From contig JBBPEB010000032.1 of NCBI GenBank assembly GCA_039096225.1, positions 806,001-870,000 on the forward strand: a stretch of DNA of 64,000 nt, given 5' to 3'. This document shows, piece by piece, positions 7,159-36,619 of the stretch. Under the pieces are notes generated by a model. The model did no database searches. It saw nothing but the letters and a program-made list of their open reading frames with translations, and was not told the origin of the DNA. Made by a program: the position numbers and the translations under genes. Positions within the stretch are counted from its first letter, which is position 1. Each line of letters starts with the position of its first letter. This DNA comes from Blastocystis sp. Blastoise. Taxonomy: Eukaryota > Protista > Bigyra: Opalinata.

Positions 7159-8884
7159 ATTGGTAAAAAAAAAAATGTAGTAATTGACTATAGTTTATAT
7201 TAATAAAATCTCTTAAGGCATTCAACACTGATTTATGACTTTTATCCAATATATAAATATTGTAGATAATACTTGAAAATAAACAAAATATATAAGGTCT
7301 ATTCACCAATTCCACTTTAATGAAGGGAATGTGAGAAATTGTTTGTGTCTTAACGATTTTGTGTGGATCTCGATTTCAGATGGCGAATCCTGCGTCATTA
7401 TTGTTTTTATTAACTATTTCTCGAGTTCATTCTTATTGGACATTTAAAAATCAATCCATAACATTATCTTGTTATTCTATTGTGTCGATCCTCGACCAAT
7501 CAAATAGGAGATTTTTTGAGATGTTCCATTGCTTGATCTCCACGAAACAAATGGGCACCAGATACCGAAAAAAAAGCCAGATTGAGTTTCCTCTTTTAAC
7601 ACATAATATTCCCTTGATTATTTTCGACTTTTTTAAAAAGAGGAAAATTCTCTACTTATCTCCTGAGGAATCCAACATTGATTTCCACAAACATAAAAAT
7701 TCTCGGTTTCTCATTCATTTCCAACTTTGTTTCCCTATTCAGTTGATTTATTTAACGGCTTCTACGATAATCAATGGATAAATAATTTTTTAGAGAAACT
7801 GAATGGACATTTATTTAATTGGATACAGGGTTCGCCACGAAGACTCTCTTGGAGTACTAATTTCCTAAAAGAGCCAGTTTCATGGGTACTTTTAGGCGCA
7901 TAAGGCGTAGATAAAAACTCTCTTGGAGTACAGACCGTACTCAAAGTACAGTTTGGCGAACCCTGATTGGATATAAGTTGTGTTTTTTTTAAACAAATTC
8001 CACTCAAACGCAGAGTTCTTTAGAGATCTTTATCATTTACTTTGATTTTCTTCTCGATTATTCTTCTTGTTGATGTTTGTCATCGATCTTCTCTTCTCCA
8101 TATCAGAAATCACAACATATATACTATATTTACTCTCTTCCTCATAGATTGACTCGTCATAGGCTTTCCCGTATCTATTCAATCTATTGGATGCAGCGCA
8201 ATCACTCTAGATCTCTAATGTTTCTATTGCTATCACCATTAGAGCAGGAAAACATATTGATTATTCTATGAAATATACATGTTCTTTCCGTATTTTCTTA
8301 TAAACTATATGCAACGAAGCTCAGTCTTATTAAGTAATATTATTAGAGTAACCAGTGGATTTCGTTTATGGATTGATCATGATTTATAAAGTCATTTTTT
8401 TCGTAAAGTCACTTTTAAACTATTTGATACTTTGTATATTGATGGACTATTGATTTTCATGATCCATAGTATTAAATGAATGATGAGAAATGAATATTGA
8501 TAGTGAATCAATTGGAATGTTGTTGTTTTTAGAATAATTTATGTAGTTGAATCTCTTTATCATAATGTGTATTTTTATTGAGTAATAAATACATTGGATG
8601 TTTTTTATTATATATTTTTTTGAAAGAGTGAACATGATTTCTTATAAATTTTTATTTTCATGTAATTCTATATTTATATTTATTCTTTATAGATATACCG
8701 TGTTTTTTGATTTATTTAAATACATGTATTGATAGATTATTGAGAATATTAGGATACACATAATAAAAACTTGTTTTTATATTTTTAATCAACAATAACG
8801 TCTTTGAATCATTTATTAACTTGTTTATATATAAGTTTATAAACAAAACAAAATGTTAAATATACATATATATATATACATATA

Positions 8885-11800
8885 TTATAAAGGAGGTAAA
8901 CCGAAAAGAGTCGGATCAAATTCATTCAATGAAGAAATAACCTATAGAATCATATATATATATATATTATTTATGTTATTCTTATTGAATAAAAAAAAAT
9001 ATAAATATAATAATGTCTAAAGAAAGATTTTATTACAATCGAAAATAATAGACACTATGGACATTTTTTCAGGTTTCTGTCAAAAGGTCCAACGACTTTT
9101 TTGTTTTGGTTTCCCCAGTGGTGAGCAGTGAAAATTTTTAAATATGTAGCTGACAAAAGGTTATTTGATTTTTCTGTTTGGTTTCCCCAGTGGTGGAGCA
9201 GTGAAAAAATTTTAAAGGGTAGCTGACAAAAGGTCCAACGACTTTTTTGCTTTGGTTTCCCCAGTGGTGAGCAGTGAAATTTTTTGTCAGAGTTTCAGTG
9301 ATTTTATAAAATCGAAAAGCAGTGCAAAAGTATGACGCACCTTAAAACAATAATTGGCGAATAAAAATGGTTTTAAATATTCTCTATTTTTTCATTTATT
9401 GGTTTTTTTATTCTTTTTGTGGTGTAATAATAAACGATATAACAAAACAAACAAATTAAATATTATCAAATAATCATAAAAACAAATAATAGAAAACAAT
9501 AATAATAAATATATAAAAAAAAGATAATAAAACATATAATAAATAATATAATAAAATATATATAATATTTAATTTATAATATTTCAACCAGGACAGTTTC
9601 AGTCTTTAATTTGCATTTAAGCCTAAGCAACCTATATAAAGAGATGATATTAGTTAAGTATTACTAATAATAATATATATATAACATTTTAAAATAATAA
9701 TAAAATAAAAAATATATACCTTTTCTAATCATTACAAGACAGGCAAGGAATCAAAGACAAAGAACCATCCTATAAAAGATATATGATAAATAGTATAATG
9801 AATAAAACAATATAATTAAATATATATATATACTTTTTATAAACCATTCTCTCCAATTAACAACAACGACAGCAACGGAACCCCTGGAAACCTATATAAA
9901 GATAGAGTAAGTTATATAATATAATAATATATAATAAAGTAAATTAATATAGAATAATAAAATATAAATATATACATTAATGCTATATAAATATAAAGTG
10001 GGGTTAGTTATATAATATGTAATAGATAATATAGATGATATATACCTTCTTTTAACATTGATTCCTTCCATTCTAGACCTAAAGAACCCATCTATAAGAG
10101 AGCCACGACCACACACAAGAAGGACCAGAACGTTTAAGGAGACCAGCAAGTGTCAAAACACCAAGCAGAGACAGCTACAATAGAAAAATGAATGAATAGA
10201 GTAGAAAAAATAAAATATAAAGAAACAGCAAACACCTACCATCATAATAGTATCATATATAATAAAATAAAAATAAAATTTAATAATATATCATATTAAT
10301 CATATAAGATATAATAAAATAAATATGTGATAAGTCATGTAGCATTTTGTTTTGTTATAAAAGGGTGTAATAGGAATTTAGAAGATATAGCTGAAATAAT
10401 GAAAATAAACATGAATAATCTCATATCTACTAAATATAGAGAATCTTCATCATAAGAAAAATGAATGGTTAAGAATAAAAGAGAAAGAAAAATTTTATTT
10501 CTATGAGGAAAATGGATATTGTTATTGTTATTTTCAATTTATCATAATTATCATAAGTAATACAAAAATTGTTTTATTTTAAAGAATTATATAGTTATTT
10601 ATCATTATATCATTTTATAATCAGTTTTGACTATGGAAGAGTGATTTTTATCCTTAATTGTCAAAATTATTTTTAGTATCACTCAGTAAGTATAAGTCTT
10701 TTAAAAAATAAATATAGGTTACAATACAGACTTATAGAGAAGACTCTGAAACTTCTATTTCCAGAATAAAAGTCATTTATATAATCCAGAATGATTGCCT
10801 GAATCATTATTTAAAGAATCAGTTTTATCACATATCTTCAATAAAATTATAAAATAAAGAAAATGAAGATAAAAAGGTCTAGAGTCGAAAATGTTATGAA
10901 ATATTATCTTTTTAATGTATTTGTCCCGATTTTTTATTAATCTGTTATCATAATATGACAAAGAGAGTGGTAAAAACATTTTAAAAGTGAATTAAAGCAA
11001 TAATTGGAATCAAGTTAAAGTCTTCTAATACCTTTAAATAGACTTGAAATACATAGAGTAAGCATTTTTTCATGCAAATAGTGTTTTTCATTTAAATAAT
11101 ATCAAAAACAAATCAAAATAGTATTTTATAATTACTCAGCAAGAACTTTTTCTAGTATTCAAGGACTTACTATTATCAAATATACGTATAAACAAACAAA
11201 AATCATATTTTATATATTTTTAGTTGAATAGTCGGAGTCGTGTTGATAGTTTATTATAAAACAAATGCAAAAATCACTTTTTTGTCAAAAAAAGTCTTAT
11301 ATCGATATATAGTTTTATTCATAATTTATTTATTGTCTACAAACTCTGTGTATTCATTTTAAGTGATTTTTAGTAAAACTAAAATTATTTGAAATACATA
11401 TTCTAATTTCGAAAATGACAAAAACATATTATATTACATATTTAGTGTTTAAATGAAGTTTAAAAGTTATTAAAATATCAATTAGTTAAAAAATATAAAA
11501 TATTGAGAATCTCCATTTTTATGACTTGTCTTAAATCACGTTAAAGGTGTATAATTGAATAGTTGCATTGATTATTTGTATGATTCTAGTAATATTTTCT
11601 AAGAATTTTGTTTTTTAACAAGAATAAATTCTTAATTTATTGTTTATCAACTTAAAAATGTATTTAAATGATTATTTTCTTGTGTAAAAGGGTATAGTGG
11701 TTATATGAAAAAAAAATTACGCAGAATCATTTGATAATATAATTTTGAAAAATAGAATTATTATTTTGAACTAAACTAATTTTTCACATATACTCATTAT

Positions 11801-13895
11801 AAAACGACTTGAATAATCTTTTGAGAAGATTATTTTGTTTTATAATACACTTAAGAAGTAATTGAATGTTATTGTGTCTCTTTTTGTTAAAAAGATTATT
11901 TTGAATGCTATTTTTGATTGATCTATATATTATCAATGCATTCAATGATGAAATAAATACATATGTAAAGAAAAAATAGTAATTGATCTAATTTATCTTC
12001 ATCTATTTGAATAGATAATTTTTGAAAAAATTAATATAATATAATTATTGATACCTATATATAAAGAATTAGTTATGTAATTGACCTTAAGACAGGAATT
12101 GAACCTGTTTTCTATCATAAACTGATAGATACTTACCAATATAAGCTTAAGGATAATATAGAATAAAAATACATAAATGAAAGTAAAATAGTAGGAATAA
12201 TGAGTCAGTATGATGTGTAAGGATATATTTATATATGTATAAGTGAAAAAGGATGCTAGAAGAAGGGAAAAGAAGTAAAAAAGAATAAAAGAGAAAGAAA
12301 TATAAAGTAAATGAGATAGGGTCTTTAATTATTGAGATTAATAAAAAAAATGAAAAATAATTTATAATAAATGACAAAGATAGATATATAGAGATCTATA
12401 ATAATAAGGAATGCAGAAGAGAAGAGGATTAGAGGATAAAGAATAAGAAGAAGATAAGGAAGATAAGGAAGAAGATAAGGAAGATAAGGAAGAATAAGAA
12501 GAAGATAAGGAAGAAGATAAGGAAGATAAGGAAGAATAAGAAGAAGATAAGGAAGAATAAGAAGAAGAAAAGAAGAATAGGAAGAAGATAAGGAAGATAA
12601 GGAAGAAGAAGAAAAGAAGAATAGGAAGAAGATAAGGAAGAAGAAGAAGAATAGGAAGAAGAATAAGAAGATAAGGAAGAATAAGAAGAATAAGAAGATA
12701 AGGAAGATAAGGAAGAAGAAGAAGAAGATAAGGAAGAAGAAGAAAAGAAGAATAGGAAGAAGAAAAAGAAAAGAAGAATAGGAAGAAGATAAGGAAGAAG
12801 AAGAAGAATAGGAAGAAGAATAAGAAGATAAGGAAGATAAGGAAGAATAAGAAGAAGATAAGGAAGAAGAAGAAAAGAAGAATAGGAAGAAGATAAGGAA
12901 GAAGAAGAAGAATAGGAAGAAGAATAAGAAGATAAGGAAGATAAGGAAGAATAAGAAGAAGGAAATGAATAATGACAACAAGAAGATGAAGAATAAATAG
13001 AATAATGATAAGAAAGAATAAATAGATTAATAAGAGAACAAGAGGATGAATGTGAAGAAGAGACAAGGAAGGAGGTGAAAAAAAGAAAGAAAAGTAAGAT
13101 AAAGAATAGGAAGAAGATATACAAGAAAATGAAGAAGAAGAGAAAGAAAAGAAAAGAAGAATAAACAAGAAACATATATAGAGAAACAGAAAGATATAAA
13201 GAAATAAAAGAGATAGATAGATAGATAGATAGATAGAGAGAAAAAAAAATACAAAGATATAAATAGATAGATACACTAATAGATGAATAGAAAGAAAGAA
13301 GAAAAGAGAGACATAAAGAAGAAATTAGATAGAAAGAGATAGAATTCTATATAGAATGAGAGATATACAAAAGAAATCAAATGAAATAGAGAATAAGATA
13401 AAAATAGATACAAGAATAAAGATAAAAAGAGAAATAGAGGAGTAGGGAAGGTGTATAAAAAAGAAAGAATATAAAGATAGGTAGAGAGGAATTGAGAAGG
13501 ATAGAGAAGGAGGAGGAAAACAGATAGAATTGGAAGACGAAGAAAAGAAGATGAGACGAAGAAGGGAGAAAAAAGGAGCAGGAAGTGAATATCAAGAAAG
13601 ATAAATTTATATAGAAAAAAATTAGAAAGAAAAATACATACAAAGAAAACGATAGGGAATGATAGAGAGAATTATAATTTGAATGACATAGAGAGAAGGA
13701 GAGACAAAGCAAGATAAAGAAGTATAATAGAAAAAACAAAGAAGAAAAAAAGAAGAATAAAAAAAGAAAAGATAGAACAATAGTATATGAGAGAAGAAAG
13801 AGACAGAAAGAAAACGGGAAATAGGGTAGAGACATAGAAGGTAATAAAATATATAGAAGGGGAGAGGGGATTGAGATAAATAAATAGATAGATAT

Positions 13896-13968
<73 letters not shown>

Positions 13969-16900
13969 GATAGAAGAATACCGAAAGATATAGAGAAGGA
14001 GATAAATATTAATAAAAAGGAAAATATGGATAGAGAGGAGATAGAATCAAACAGAGAAGGAGAAGTAGATAAAAGTCGATTGAGGGAAGAGAGAAGTAGA
14101 TTAAAATAAAAACAAATAGCAAGAGTTAAAAGGAAGAAGGGAAGAATATAGAATGATTTGAAGAATGAGATGTATATAGAAGTGAATAGAAGGAAATAGA
14201 GAAGGAGAAGTAGATAGAAAAGATTAAAAATAGAAGGAGATAGAAAGATAAGAGAATGATATAGATACAATAGAATGAGATAGAGAAGATAAAGTAGATA
14301 GAAATGGATAGAAATAAGAAAAATAAATAGGATAAGAGAGAAAGAGAGATAAAAGGATATAAAAGGATATAGAAGGAGAGAAAACGGATTGAGATGTAGT
14401 AAGATGGAAGGATGTAGATGGAAATAGAGAAGTAGATAGAAGATGATGGAGAATAAAGAGGAGATAGAAGAGGAGATAGAAGGAGAAAAAGAAGAAGAGG
14501 AAGTAAATTAAGTTAGAAGGAGATATAATAAGATAGAGAAGTAGATATACGTAGATATAAGGAAATATACGAAGATATAAGTAGATAAGAGAAAATAGAA
14601 GGAAATAGAGAATGAGATTGAGACACATAAATGAGGTAGAATGAGATAGATAAGGATAGAGAAATATGAAGAGAAATATAGGAATACAGAGAGATAGAAT
14701 GATGTTGAAAGAGAAAGAAAAGGAAAGACTGAAGATTGAGACAGAAGGAGTAGCTGAGATAAAAGGAAGATAGAGAAGGAAATTGAAAGATGAAGGAAGA
14801 AGGAGAGAAGATGAAAGAAGAAGAATATAGAAGAAGATAGAGAATGAGATAATAGGGATAGAAAGAGAAAAATAGGAAAAAAGATGGTTAGAAGAAAATA
14901 GAAAAGGAGAAAGAAGGAGAGATAGAAGGAGAAATAGAAGGATATAAAAGAGATTAAGAAAGAAGTTAGAGACAAGAAGATATAGATATATAGAAAGAAA
15001 TAAAAGGATTAAATAGAAGATTAAGATAGAAGAAAAGAGACAAAATAGAAGTAGATATAACAATATAGAGAATGAAAGGATAGAAATAAAAATAGAAAAT
15101 AGATAACTAGAACATAAGAATATATAATAATAGAGAGAAGGAGAGAGAGAAAAAAAAGTAGATATAAAGTGGAAAAGGAGACATAGAAGGAAATATAAAA
15201 GGAAACAAGAAGGTAGAAAGAGACATATAAGATAAAATAGACAGGGACAGAGAGAAATAAATGGAAAAAGAATAAGGATAAAGATGGATACGAGAATAGA
15301 GAGGGAGAGAAGGAAGATTGAGATAGAATTATACAGAAAGAGGAGAGAAGGAAGATAAAGAAGGAAAATAGGGCAGTAAAAAAAAGGGAATCAGAAGGAG
15401 GAGAGAAGAAGTATGAGAAGAATAGAAAGAAGGAAGAGGAGGAAGGCAAATAATAGAAGAGAACTATATATATAATAAATAGTGATATAAATATAAATAA
15501 GAAGATGAAGATCTGAAAAAAGCAAAGAATTATATGGAGAAGAAGAAGAAGAAGAGGAAGAGGAAGAAAAGGAGGGTATACACTAATACATGTCGAGGAA
15601 AAAGAAGTATAGAATAAGGAGAAGAGGATAACAGGATAAAAGAAAAAGACATAACGAAATACAATGTAAATAGAATAGTGATTAAGAAAGAGTAATGAAA
15701 GAGTGATATAAAAGGGAAGCGAAGATAAGAGAGAGGTATAATTAAAAAAAAGAAAAATAAAGGAATTTAGATAGAAGAAAAAATAAAAGAAAAATGAAGA
15801 TCTGAGGAAGATAATGAATCAAAGGGAGAGACAAGGATATAGGCTGGAGACAAGGCATAGGAAGAAGTAATAAAGAAAGAAGATGAAGAAATAAGGAGAT
15901 AAAAGTGTAGAAGGAAGAAAATGAAGAAGAGAGAAGAAGGAATCATTTTGTGTAAGAAGAAGAAATAAAGAAGAACTAGATAATAAATAAATAAATAAAT
16001 AAATAAATAAACATACCTAATAGAAAAAAATGAATTTGGTGATGTTGAGTCATAGGGAAAGATAACCAACAGAAACAGTAGAAAACAACCTAAATAAATA
16101 AATAATAATAAATAAAAATATAAAAATAATGAAAATAAATAATAAAATGAATTAGATTCTAATTTAAGAAAAAACAAAAAGAAAGCTAATAATAGATAGA
16201 ATGAATATACGATAAGTACTCTATTATATAATACTTAAAAATATAACAAAGAAAAAAATTAGAGATAATTATAAAAATAAATAAATACATATATACTTTG
16301 AAAGTAGTTTGACATCATAGACGTTGTTGACATGGACTGAAGAGGACTCTTATAACCATGGACGAGCAGGAACCTATACATGCTAGAGAATGGGAGAATG
16401 TTAATATTGATAAAGAATAAAAAATAGTAATATACATACAAGAGAATAATCTGAAGTTAAAATCAACTTCTATTTTTTAAAATAACAGCTAATAAAAATA
16501 AAATAAAAATAAAGAAAATAAGTAACAAATGAAAATATTTTCTAAGTTAATAGGCTCAATAGCGTATGGGTGTATTCAGGTCTTAAAAGAAAAATCATTT
16601 TTGCGGGAATATCAAGAAACTCAAAAAAAGTATTTTTTCCCTCCTTTTTTCACTGTCACTTTTCTTTAATATTTTTGACTTTTTAGTATTAAAAACGATT
16701 CTTACAGGCATGTATAGAGACTCTATACCACTTTTGAGACTAAAAATCAAATATTTAAAAATGAGTGAAAAATCTTGACTAGCAAGAAAAACAATTATGT
16801 GAAGCTGAGTATGTTGTGTATACACATATCTAACAACAGAGATGATAAAAACACACAACTCCTCTTGGTTTAGGACATAATTATGAATTCTCTCAAAAAA

Positions 16901-17959
16901 GCTATTTTAAACCTTAAAACGATACCCTGAACTATAAATCAAGTCCTGAATGATATTCTAAAGTCATATTTTTAAAAACAGGTTTAATGACGATAATCAA
17001 TAAACAAAAACAAGAGCTTCCGTTTTACTTTTCTTTTTTGAATTTTTAATTGTTTTGACTTTCTAGGGTAGTTGGCTGAAAGAAATGTTGTCGTCTTTAG
17101 GCTAAAAAATGATGAATAAAAAAGTCAAGTCATTTTATTGTTTTTTCCTTGGGAAATAAAAAAGAAGAAATTTTTAGGTGTGTTTTGGTTTAGGCTGTAT
17201 AATGGTTTTTATTGTAAAAGGACTTGACGAGAATGATTGAAATGATAATACATCACTCAGAGAACACACAACTTTAAAAAATTTGTCACTCATGTAATCC
17301 ATTCCTGAATTATAGACTTCAGAGAAAAAATTAAAGTCTTTTTGGTTTTAAACAGTCATTTTAAATCATAAAACACTGTAAAATAGTCAATATTTAGAAT
17401 GTCTATGATTATATAAATAAACAATATATTTTGTAGAGTTATTTTTAAGTTTTTCTCGTCAAAAAGAGAGAAACTTGACAAGTTGGCGGACACTCTTTTC
17501 TCGAGTTTAGGCCAACGTATTTTTGATTAAAAAATCCCAGTCATTTTGTTGTTTCTCTTACGGGAAATAGGGTCAAAAAAACACAAAATGTCCATAGTGA
17601 GATATATGCATATATACACATGTGATTCCTTGGAATTGATTCATATCAAAAGACTGAGAAGGAACAGCAACAACTTTCATATCTATATAAAGTATAATAA
17701 ACAAATAGTATAATATAGTATATATAACATAAAAATAGAATACTATTATAACTAATTATATATATATATACTAGCAGCTAGTGCGGCTTTGATTCCATTT
17801 ATTGAGTCCTCAAAAACAATACATTCCTGCGGGGATTTATTCAGCTTTTTGGCTGCTACTAAAAATATATCTGGAAACGGTTTACCTATTTATATATATA
17901 TATAATAAATATATATATTTATTTAATAAAAGAATATATAAAACAATGATTCATTAAAA

Positions 17960-17995
<36 letters not shown>

Positions 17996-18820
17996 AAAGA
18001 ATATATAAAATAATGATTCATTAAAACTATATATATAATTAATATATATATTTATATAATAAAATAATAAATAAAATAATGATTCATTAAAACTATATAT
18101 ATAATTAATATATATATTTATATAATAAAATAATAAATAAAATGATGATTCATTAAATATATATATATAAACATATATATAATAAAATAATATATAAAAT
18201 AATGATTCATTAAATATATATATATATATATATACAATGAACAACTCCTGGTTCTGAAGATGAAACTAAATAAGACATTTTACTGAAAACTTCCTATATA
18301 TATATATATATTATATTATATATAAATTATATCTATTTAAAGAATTCTAAAGAATATACAGGATGTGTTTTTGCTTTCCCTTCTAAAATAATTTTAGAAG
18401 ACGATGTTGCAATAGCTTGTTTTATATTATTATTATAAAAATATTCAGTTATTCTTTCTGCACCTGGCATATATGGAGATTCATAATTAGTTTCATTCAT
18501 ATATTGACGATAAAGTTTCATCTATAGAAAATGAAATTTATGATTATCATTCCAATTCAAATCAGTTTTAATAATAGACATAAACTTACGTATTCTATAT
18601 CAGTTATTACTTCTTCTAAATGAAACTCTCTAATAATCATTTGTATAGCAGCCATAGCTGTTTGACCTGAAAACCTCCGTTTTATATCAGGACTTAATTT
18701 CCAATTATTTGGAGATACGATTTTCAAAACTTTCTCTTTACATATATTAGAGATTGATTCTGAATCAGTAAGTGTTCCATCCAAGTCCCATATAACTACC
18801 CATTCATTTGTAGATGTCAT
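8885..18820 (-). CDS. HAD-superfamily hydrolase, pseudouridine-5'-phosphatase (HDHD1/PUDP/GS1)-like; 6 exons, last exon 8885-8941 behind an 8.7-kb intron
   Basis: Motif I WDLDGTLTDSE, AIATSS, KPFPDIFLVAA, VFEDSINGIKAALAA. Exon 17682-17618 (MKVVAVPSQSFDMNQFQGITC) splices in phase 0 to exon 8941-8885 (VISSLNEFDPTLFGLPPL*), matching the family C-terminal SLxDFxPxLFGLP motif. Confidence 0.9.
9081..9285. repeat. left subterminal tandem repeat, 3 x 73 bp
   Basis: Unit CAAAAGGTCCAACGACTTTTTTGTTTTGGTTTCCCCAGTGGTGAGCAGTGAAA (copy 2 diverged) starts at 9081, 9154 and 9227. Confidence 0.9.
12084..12152 (-). ncRNA. tRNA-like cloverleaf (non-canonical; probably not a decoding tRNA)
   Basis: Minus strand reads CCTTAAG CTTA-TATTGG-TAAG TA TCTATCA-GTTTA-TGATAGA AA ACAGG-TTCAATT-CCTGT CTTAAGG T: four fully paired stems (7/4/7/5 bp) and a perfect B box GGTTCAATTCC, but no 8-9 linker and no U33 anticodon loop. 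Confidence 0.7.
12153..16010. repeat. ~3.9-kb purine-rich (A/G on +, C-depleted) low-complexity tract with GAA/GAT/AAG/TAA core (about 12440-12960) and (GATA)n runs (about 13210-13240, 13885-13970)
   Basis: Direct inspection: extreme strand asymmetry; the triplet phase of the core is broken by 2-nt slips, e.g. near 12570. Confidence 0.9.
17071..17570. repeat. right subterminal degenerate direct repeat (~90 bp x 2, at 17071-17158 and 17482-17569)
   Basis: GTTGGC...TCG..TTTAGGC...AAAAAA..C.AGTCATTTT.TTGTTT......GGGAAATA is shared by both copies. Confidence 0.6.
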
Positions 18821-36185: not shown

Positions 36186-36619
36186 ATCATTAATTCTTTT
36201 CAAGTTTATTTTCACACTCGAGGACTTTATTAATGGTATATTGTGAATTTTAATGACTTAGAATAAAAATGGATGGAATGAAAACTAAAAGCAATAGAAA
36301 AATGAAAAAGAGAATAAAAAAATAAGACGGATTTCGTTTATCCTTCAAATTTGAGCGGAAATTCTAATATTCCCATGATTCTTGCAATTCCAACTAAAAA
36401 CATTTCGATCAAGATATGTACATTCTTTAATAAGAATCTTAAACTAAGAATAAGCTGTTTAAAATGGTTATGATGAAAACAAAACAAAACAATTTAATTT
36501 TGCACAAATAAGAATTACAATTAAAGTATTATAGTATAGAAGAAAAAAAGAAAATGAAAATATGTATAATATACACGAGAATCAAATAATAAAGTATGAA
36601 AAAGAATATATGTTTCTAT

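Follow-up and report, generated by a model that had tools for sequence, protein, structure and literature searches.

We analysed a 64,000-nt stretch of the genome of Blastocystis sp. Blastoise (positions 806,001 to 870,000 of the forward strand of contig JBBPEB010000032.1, GenBank assembly GCA_039096225.1), hereafter called the window, in which about 25% of the nucleotides are G or C (GC). On its minus strand, the window carries a gene for a HAD-family hydrolase that runs from ~18818 to 8885 and whose exons match the HAD_2 and Hydrolase profiles in order. The last intron of this gene is occupied by an element of ~8.5 kb, at 9053-17599 (on contig 21 of the assembly), which is bounded by the inverted repeats of a CACTA transposon. 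This copy landed 18 nt inside the intron, and its insertion lengthened the intron from ~126 nt to 8676 nt. The exon-like islands in the interior of the element have the same orientation as the HAD gene. The ends of the element and the host exons that border it are given below, in positions of the window.

8885..8941, minus strand: last HAD exon (VISSLNEFDPTLFGLPPL, then the stop; ending in ...FGLPPL)
9050..9052: left target-site duplication AGA, matching the AGA at the right end
9053..9067, plus strand: left terminal inverted repeat CACTATGGACATTTT, complementary to the right end at 15/15 positions
9077..9279, plus strand: left subterminal repeats, a 73-bp unit present 2.8 times, each unit containing GGTTTCCCCAGTGGTG
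17118..17570, minus strand: right subterminal region; a direct repeat of ~45 bp (TATTTCCC..AAAATGACT..TTTTTTA) stands twice, at ~17525-17570 and 17118-17163
17585..17599, minus strand: right terminal inverted repeat, CACTATGGACATTTT on the minus strand
17600..17602: right target-site duplication AGA, pairing with 9050..9052
17618..17682, minus strand: HAD-hydrolase exon (..NMKVVAVPSQSFDMNQFQGITC), with its donor GTATATATG 18 nt before the element

An earlier note on this DNA had described a giant CACTA element without a transposase, bounded by 15-bp terminal inverted repeats (TIRs) and a 3-bp target-site duplication; it had taken the organised non-coding cargo for a candidate new system and had proposed to search the genome for the ends, for shared cargo, and for an autonomous partner with a Transposase_21 domain. 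The ends and the duplication are present as described, and the lack of a transposase was borne out by inspection of the open reading frames (ORFs) and by tblastn. Ends that start with CACTA, a duplication of 2-3 bp, subterminal arrays, and signs of mobility, all of which are expected of a CACTA/En-Spm transposon, were found here; a Tnp2/Transposase_21 DDE transposase, which is likewise expected, is absent from 9053-17599, and the element is therefore non-autonomous. When the whole genome (33.34 Mb in 34 contigs) was searched, the TIR gave 61 exact matches and 5 with one mismatch, compared with 0 and 3 for the reversed control, which is far beyond chance. The exact matches form ~32 pairs, spaced mostly by 8.4-8.84 kb. 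The 73-bp repeats stand at the left end of all copies and also of a 15.5-kb element that bears a transposase, and the ~45-bp repeats of the right end are unlike them. We conclude that 9053-17599 is very probably a subfamily A copy (see below) of a young, multi-copy, non-autonomous CACTA/En-Spm (CMC superfamily) DNA transposon. "Giant" is not warranted, since 8.5 kb is an ordinary size among CACTA elements, and neither is "new system", since the element behaves as a normal non-autonomous family. The kind of transposon is itself ordinary; its cargo is unusually large and stable.

Copies that bear the cargo number 36 and are found on 21 of the 34 contigs, with at most three on any contig and none on the other 13. 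Two of the checks proposed earlier thus came out as expected of a mobile family: the copies are many, and the same cargo is present in all 36. For 21 copies (that of the window and 20 more that were fetched), the sequences were aligned. Members of subfamily A are ~8.55 kb long and 99.6-99.99% identical to the window copy; those of subfamily B are ~8.83 kb long, with 92% overall identity to A. Every aligned copy has its own flanks, with a perfect 3-bp duplication in 14 of the 21 and a 2-bp duplication in 7. On contig 13, one copy is nested within the end of a neighbouring copy (CAC TAT/copy/TAT GGACATTTT), and the outer copy has a GAT duplication of its own. This site displays the filled state and, because the interrupted sequence is normal end sequence, the empty state as well; no excision or empty allele was seen among the copies examined. 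A TIR pair 22 kb apart (C24:351410-373427, on contig 24) proved to be a B-type copy whose right arm is split by an insertion of ~13 kb. The family is a recently active one.

Subfamilies A and B are recombinant mosaics of each other. They are 100% identical over 9053-9850, 10300-10545, 13250-16150, and 17350-17599, and 80-95% identical between these blocks. Identity over 2.9 kb of low-complexity DNA is beyond any constraint and is therefore the result of recent recombination between elements. We also considered selection as the cause of the 10300-10545 block. A single-copy deletion derivative of 4.4 kb, which lacks 11745-15688, turned out to be related to the B type rather than to form a lineage of its own; recombination thus explains the block, and selection was rejected.

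The distribution of the copies bears on a further suggestion of the earlier note, namely, that the element might be domesticated as a structural chromosomal locus (a centromere, a boundary, or a replication origin), with about one per chromosome. Many copies do lie within ~130 kb of contig ends, and the 3.86-kb strand-asymmetric tract of the interior could form unusual DNA structures. However, the copies are dispersed unevenly, from none to three per contig, they are near-identical, with intact ends and fresh duplications, and the window copy sits inside the intron of a gene. Such a structural role is very improbable. In metagenome contigs, the pattern of the tRNA-like module described below had 0 matches, and 12 matches to the end pattern lacked the subterminal motif and were rejected as chance matches.

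Transposase_21 (Tnp2) matches were found at four places in the genome. One of these, at ~C23:375 kb, lies within the 15.5-kb element mentioned above, whose ends (C23:362896 and C23:378401) carry the same TIR, and it provides the candidate for the autonomous partner that was sought. The transposase frame of this element is open for at least 721 amino acids and is single-copy at the DNA level. In Pfam, its protein matched Transposase_21 with 28.1 bits (the cut-off is 28.6) and, weakly, DUF4218; the Atlas look-alikes of this transposase carry Transposase_21 and Plavaka. A second transposase lineage has three near-identical copies (C5:500192, C19:220920, and C23:205345), with a frame open for at least 718 amino acids. 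The transposases of the two lineages are 53% identical, with 2 gap positions over 716 amino acids, and on this ground both look intact.

The comparison between the partner and the window element covers ~7.2 kb of the partner's 15.5 kb, in three pieces. The two elements share ~512 bp at the left end, with 85.6% identity, and 164 bp at the right end, with 90% identity; the shared left end takes in the subterminal repeats and a TGTTTGTT-type word. The rest of the ~7.2 kb showed no relation to the interior of the window element at the DNA or protein level, and no tRNA-like module was found in the partner among 150 scored matches of a covariance model. Because only the ends are common to both over the parts compared, the family appears to have its own cargo and not to be a deletion derivative of the 15.5-kb element. 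Most likely, a Tnp2-type DDE transposase made elsewhere would excise and reinsert the element, with the single 15.5-kb element on contig 23, which has the same 15-bp ends and left subterminal repeats, as the best candidate source of the enzyme; insertion would leave a duplication of 3 bp, sometimes of 2 bp. We also noted in the partner two adjoining open frames of 86 and 152 amino acids (C23:376793-377493, plus strand), divergent from its transposase gene, which may be an accessory gene and which have no match in the window element.

The interior of the element holds the following features, listed in the direction of the minus strand.

16603..16609, minus strand: E2F-like word TTCCCGC (GCGGGAA on the plus strand) upstream of island R1
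16440..16469, minus strand: exon-like island R1 (AATAG/.../GTATGTAT)
16297..16382, minus strand: exon-like island R2 (two possible acceptors; donor GTATATATG)
16017..16089, minus strand: exon-like island R3 (TTTAG/.../GTATGTTT)
12153..16010: low-complexity tract of 3858 bp, made of degenerate AAG/GAA, AGAT, and 9-30-bp units
12085..12152, minus strand: tRNA-like module of 68 nt
10241..12084: "spacer", present only in the family and its relatives, at 77-100% identity, with a second TTTGTTTTGTT at 10346-10356 (plus strand)
10046..10174, minus strand: exon-like island L1, 129 nt
9834..9891, minus strand: exon-like island L2, with a net 1-nt insertion or deletion (indel) between A and B
9720..9769, minus strand: exon-like island L3 (TATAG/.../GTATATAT)
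9590..9631, minus strand: exon-like island L4, at or below 9631, with the acceptor ...TATATAG/GTTGC and a provisional 3' limit
9441..9455, minus strand: TTTGTTTGTTTTGTT motif, which may signal the 3' end of a transcript of this strand

This is the order in which the earlier note had read the parts, from the promoter-like word to the subterminal repeats, and all of them are present. Its statement that the interior holds no protein-like ORF was likewise confirmed: in 7.9 kb, no credible ORF was found outside the composition-driven frames of the tract. On the plus strand, the tract consists of 57% A, 26% G, 15% T, and 2.4% C; its minus strand is accordingly just 2.4% G, and the dinucleotide AG occurs there no more than 14 times over the 3858 nt. 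Because the minus strand is so poor in G, it contains open frames of 142-304 amino acids, and these are the one point in favour of a cryptically autonomous element, whose transposase would be scattered over numerous small exons or lie in these long frames. However, these frames encode only strings rich in L, F, S, P, Y, and I, each frame has 8-18 stops over the 3.9 kb, and tblastn found no match inside the element for either transposase lineage or for any ORF piece of the partner. Cryptic autonomy is accordingly hardly to be expected. The same search was the check for a decayed transposase that the earlier note had named, and that candidate was rejected; nor did the interior resemble any of the proteins sampled from the autonomous element. 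A coding spacer was rejected too, since the spacer has no ORF in A or B and the 288 substitutions between A and B in it show no codon periodicity.

The seven islands differ from the sequence around them in composition, with a GC fraction of 0.26-0.44 compared with 0.09-0.22 between islands, and their borders (...TAG/ and /GTATRT) follow the consensus of the host introns in the window. In subfamily B, L1 is split by an additional 41-nt GT..AG segment that is exactly absent from A. This segment has the look of a real intron that was gained or lost, which lends indirect support to the notion that the strand is, or was, transcribed and spliced. Most islands have stops in all frames, and the net 1-nt indel in L2 indicates that this island is not coding. 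A DNA search with the spacer (10350-12060) and the left islands found only the family copies and relatives of 77-97% identity, on contigs 2, 7, 24, 25, 28, 33, and 34; the left ends differ in some of the relatives, and in all of them, a tract of 3.9-5.2 kb separates the module from the right arm. No host parent gene of the islands or the spacer was found among the scored genome matches, which for the islands, searched one by one and not as joined exons, were 40 of 266 candidates. The islands may be the framework of a non-coding transcript that is spliced, or what is left of one.

One explanation of this organisation is that the element depends on its cargo as a functioning, organised RNA system. 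A promoter at ~16.6 kb would drive a minus-strand transcript in which R1-R3 are spliced to L1-L4, the G-poor tract would serve as a giant AG-free intron or as the body of a long non-coding RNA (lncRNA), the tRNA mimic would set an RNA end by means of RNase P, as at the MALAT1 3' end, and the RNA would aid the family, for example, in evading silencing or in transposition. The order of the parts is kept in 36 of 36 copies as well as in the 77-97% relatives, each with its tract; the donors and acceptors match the host consensus, the 41-nt segment is present or absent as precisely as a real intron, AG is scarce in the minus-strand tract, the module is under structural selection (see below), and the 4.4-kb deletion derivative was not amplified. 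On the other hand, the islands evolve as fast as their introns or faster and include a frame-breaking indel, the blocks of 100% identity are due to recombination and not to constraint, and the 40-100 nt that lie upstream of the module show little conservation (~75% identity between A and B, with indels) and in other module families are AT-rich, not pyrimidine-rich, so that no stabilising element of the MALAT1 kind is evident. We consider a needed RNA system unlikely.

The part of the cargo that stands out is the module at 12085-12152. Its minimum-free-energy fold is the fully paired, tRNA-like cloverleaf claimed for it (-20.8 kcal/mol; z-score, -3.1; 23 standard pairs), with a 7-bp acceptor stem, a 4-bp D stem whose loop ends in TGG, a 7-bp anticodon-like stem with a 5-nt loop, and a 5-bp T stem with the loop TTCAATT. 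No linker separates the stems. ARAGORN found no tRNA at the module, and Rfam gave no family at the gathering threshold or, in a 351-bp search, at an E value of 10 or less, the tRNA and mascRNA-menRNA models included. A canonical tRNA gene was rejected on these blanks, on the missing 8-9 linker after the acceptor stem, and on the 7-bp stem with its 5-nt loop. With a covariance model built from subfamilies A and B and scored among 1930 genome candidates, at least 150 full-length matches were obtained, 36 of them in this CACTA family. A pattern based on the CC-to-T-arm spacing had 226 genome matches and the T-arm 13-mer GGTTCAATTCCTG had 236 exact occurrences, compared with 0 in each control. The length is fixed at 66-68 nt. 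In the window and the fetched loci, the covariance model found no other variants of the module, and in the window, the copy described here stands alone.

Variants of the module from other sequence families allowed us to count pair changes, by reading the printed sequences against the window copy. The CCTTAGA... family has six double-sided changes (pairs 6-63, 7-62, 10-19, 24-42, 26-40, and 45-61), the CCCCAAG... family has nine, and within families, there are series of G-C, G.T, and A-T. Between A and B, the module differs at 5 of 68 positions, with one compensatory pair, and its flanks differ by 18-25%; over the 100 nt upstream, a 17-nt gap is present as well. The T arm and the D loop ending in TGG are invariant in all module families. 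In tRNA, the T arm and the GG of the D loop form the elbow that is read by RNase P, RNase Z, and other tRNA handlers. Compensatory changes in the stems, together with the invariant elbow, indicate that the fold is under selection, and the module is the sole part of the cargo with evidence of this kind. Its flanks differ between families: the pyrimidine tract upstream is confined to this CACTA family, whereas the other families are AT-rich there. Beyond the module, the two commonest other families have runs of T5-T7 at a distance of 6-15 nt, and subfamily B has a T4 run at 17 nt; in subfamily A, the 50 nt that come after the module are free of T4 runs.

The commonest module family has the acceptor stem CTTTATG/CATGAAG, (TA)n flanks, and the T5-T7 runs. 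It clusters near contig ends, in units a few kilobases apart, on contigs 6, 7, 10, and 11 (first ~70 kb) and at C1:121-150 kb and 409-418 kb. The 4.4-kb derivative no longer has a module of its own; 315 bp past its end (C22:33429-33496) lies one that belongs to another sequence family, so that a different module-bearing repeat adjoins the derivative.

What the fold is kept for can be read in more than one way. It is nearly as likely as not that any transcript crossing the module would be cut by RNase P and RNase Z. That DNA transposons recruited the module as an RNA processing signal, which here would terminate or set free a G-poor pyrimidine RNA of ~4 kb made from a non-coding unit that is spliced, is a more ambitious proposal, and we hold it to be improbable.

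A Pack-CACTA-type chimera, in which no part would serve the element, is another explanation, and a somewhat better one, though still on the unlikely side. The islands would be decaying gene fragments captured from the host or from an older element, the tract would be an expanded microsatellite, and the module would be a captured RNA polymerase III unit, such as the head of a tRNA-derived short interspersed nuclear element (SINE) or a TFIIIC site, that spreads among repeats. The exon-intron look of islands that have stops in all frames is consistent with this, and so are the several unrelated repeated contexts of the module and the T runs that follow it in other families and in B. The T arm GGTTCAATTCC, invariant in 236 copies, fits the B-box consensus of type-2 RNA polymerase III promoters. 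Low-complexity DNA, moreover, makes up ~12% of the genomes of tortoise isolates (PMC12129017). However, the search for a host parent came up empty within the scope given above, subfamily A has no nearby T4 run, the A box, as read from the sequence, is imperfect, and the acceptor and anticodon-like stems, with their compensatory changes, suggest that an RNA fold is preserved and not just a DNA site.

The reading that we prefer is therefore that of an ordinary, trans-mobilised CACTA family in which the cargo other than the module is most likely passenger DNA and the module is a selected RNA fold. Several points weigh against it. All amplified copies, and the relatives diverged by up to 23%, retain the full 8.5-kb cargo, which pure passenger DNA explains less well than useful cargo would. 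The Pfam score of the partner for Transposase_21 is right at the cut-off. That the 15.5-kb element, rather than the second lineage, supplies the enzyme, and that it is competent to do so, we infer from the shared ends alone. Finally, the T arm would make a good B box, and reading of the DNA by TFIIIC, and not cleavage of an RNA, could explain its constancy.

Among known systems, maize En/Spm and its dSpm/I derivatives resemble this family in their CACTA ends, 3-bp duplication, and subterminal arrays that differ between the two ends, and also in having defective copies moved in trans by the Tnp2-type transposase of a longer element, which here we infer. The layout of En/Spm is similar too: a single long transcription unit whose small exons lie towards the two ends, on either side of a middle part of several kilobases. 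Whereas dSpm elements are internal deletions of En/Spm, the window element shares only ~512 bp and 164 bp of the ends of its partner, and its 7.9-kb interior is unrelated to the parts of the partner that were read. Unlike in maize, a third of the insertions here have a 2-bp duplication, and the host is a stramenopile gut protist. Plant Pack-CACTA elements (soybean Tgm and captures in rice and Arabidopsis) are likewise large, without a transposase, and have an exon-intron interior amplified with the element, but here there is no parent gene among the scored matches, the islands are without any reading frame, and a structured small-RNA module and a 3.9-kb homopurine/homopyrimidine-like tract form part of the cargo.

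For the module, the closest parallels are mascRNA and menRNA, at the 3' ends of MALAT1 and NEAT1, which are also compact cloverleaves situated in non-coding sequence and have acceptor and T arms as well as an anticodon arm that does not decode. Folds of this type are substrates of RNase P and RNase Z. In contrast to them, the module has no Rfam match (E of 10 or less) and no conserved upstream element of the triple-helix type, and it occurs in hundreds of copies in repeats. The heads of tRNA-derived SINEs and TFIIIC-bound sites that resemble tRNA genes share with it the multicopy tRNA-shaped unit, the B-box-like T arm, and, in several families, the oligo-T that follows. Unlike SINE heads, however, the module lies inside cut-and-paste DNA transposons, has a length of 66-68 nt and stems that covary as a folded RNA, and in subfamily A lacks a nearby terminator.

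The mobile elements of the genus Blastocystis have so far been tallied and not described (PMC12129017). The present analysis documents a recently active CACTA family and a candidate autonomous partner, with a fresh insertion through which an intron of the host grew from 126 nt to 8.7 kb. The part of most note is the tRNA mimic, a linkerless cloverleaf of fixed length with an invariant elbow and covarying stems, present in hundreds of copies in unrelated repeats. Should the module prove to be a target of RNase P and RNase Z or a binding site of TFIIIC, it would reveal how cut-and-paste elements exploit the host tRNA machinery and would offer a simple handle on this, in that RNA ends would fall at fixed positions. 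If it were a processing signal, the large conserved cargo would be a functional RNA device and not junk, and the transposon would have a counterpart of the MALAT1/NEAT1 3' end that arose independently in a stramenopile.

Two minor observations concern the host genes of the window. The motif TTTGTTTTGTT occurs four times (8842-8852, 36478-36491, and 9441-9451 on the minus strand and 10346-10356 on the plus strand), compared with 0.07 occurrences expected; the last two are inside the element, and each of the two outside it is found a short way 3' of a host gene, on the coding strand. A downstream motif of the TGTTTGTT type is reported not to be enriched after the genes of tortoise isolates (PMC12129017), and the positions of TTTGTTTTGTT hint that it may be a variant of the 3'-end motif in a lineage for which no enrichment of the classical motif was reported. 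In the HAD hydrolase gene, a 66-bp tandem repeat (4.5 units, 90% matches) occupies 17895-18192, within an intron.

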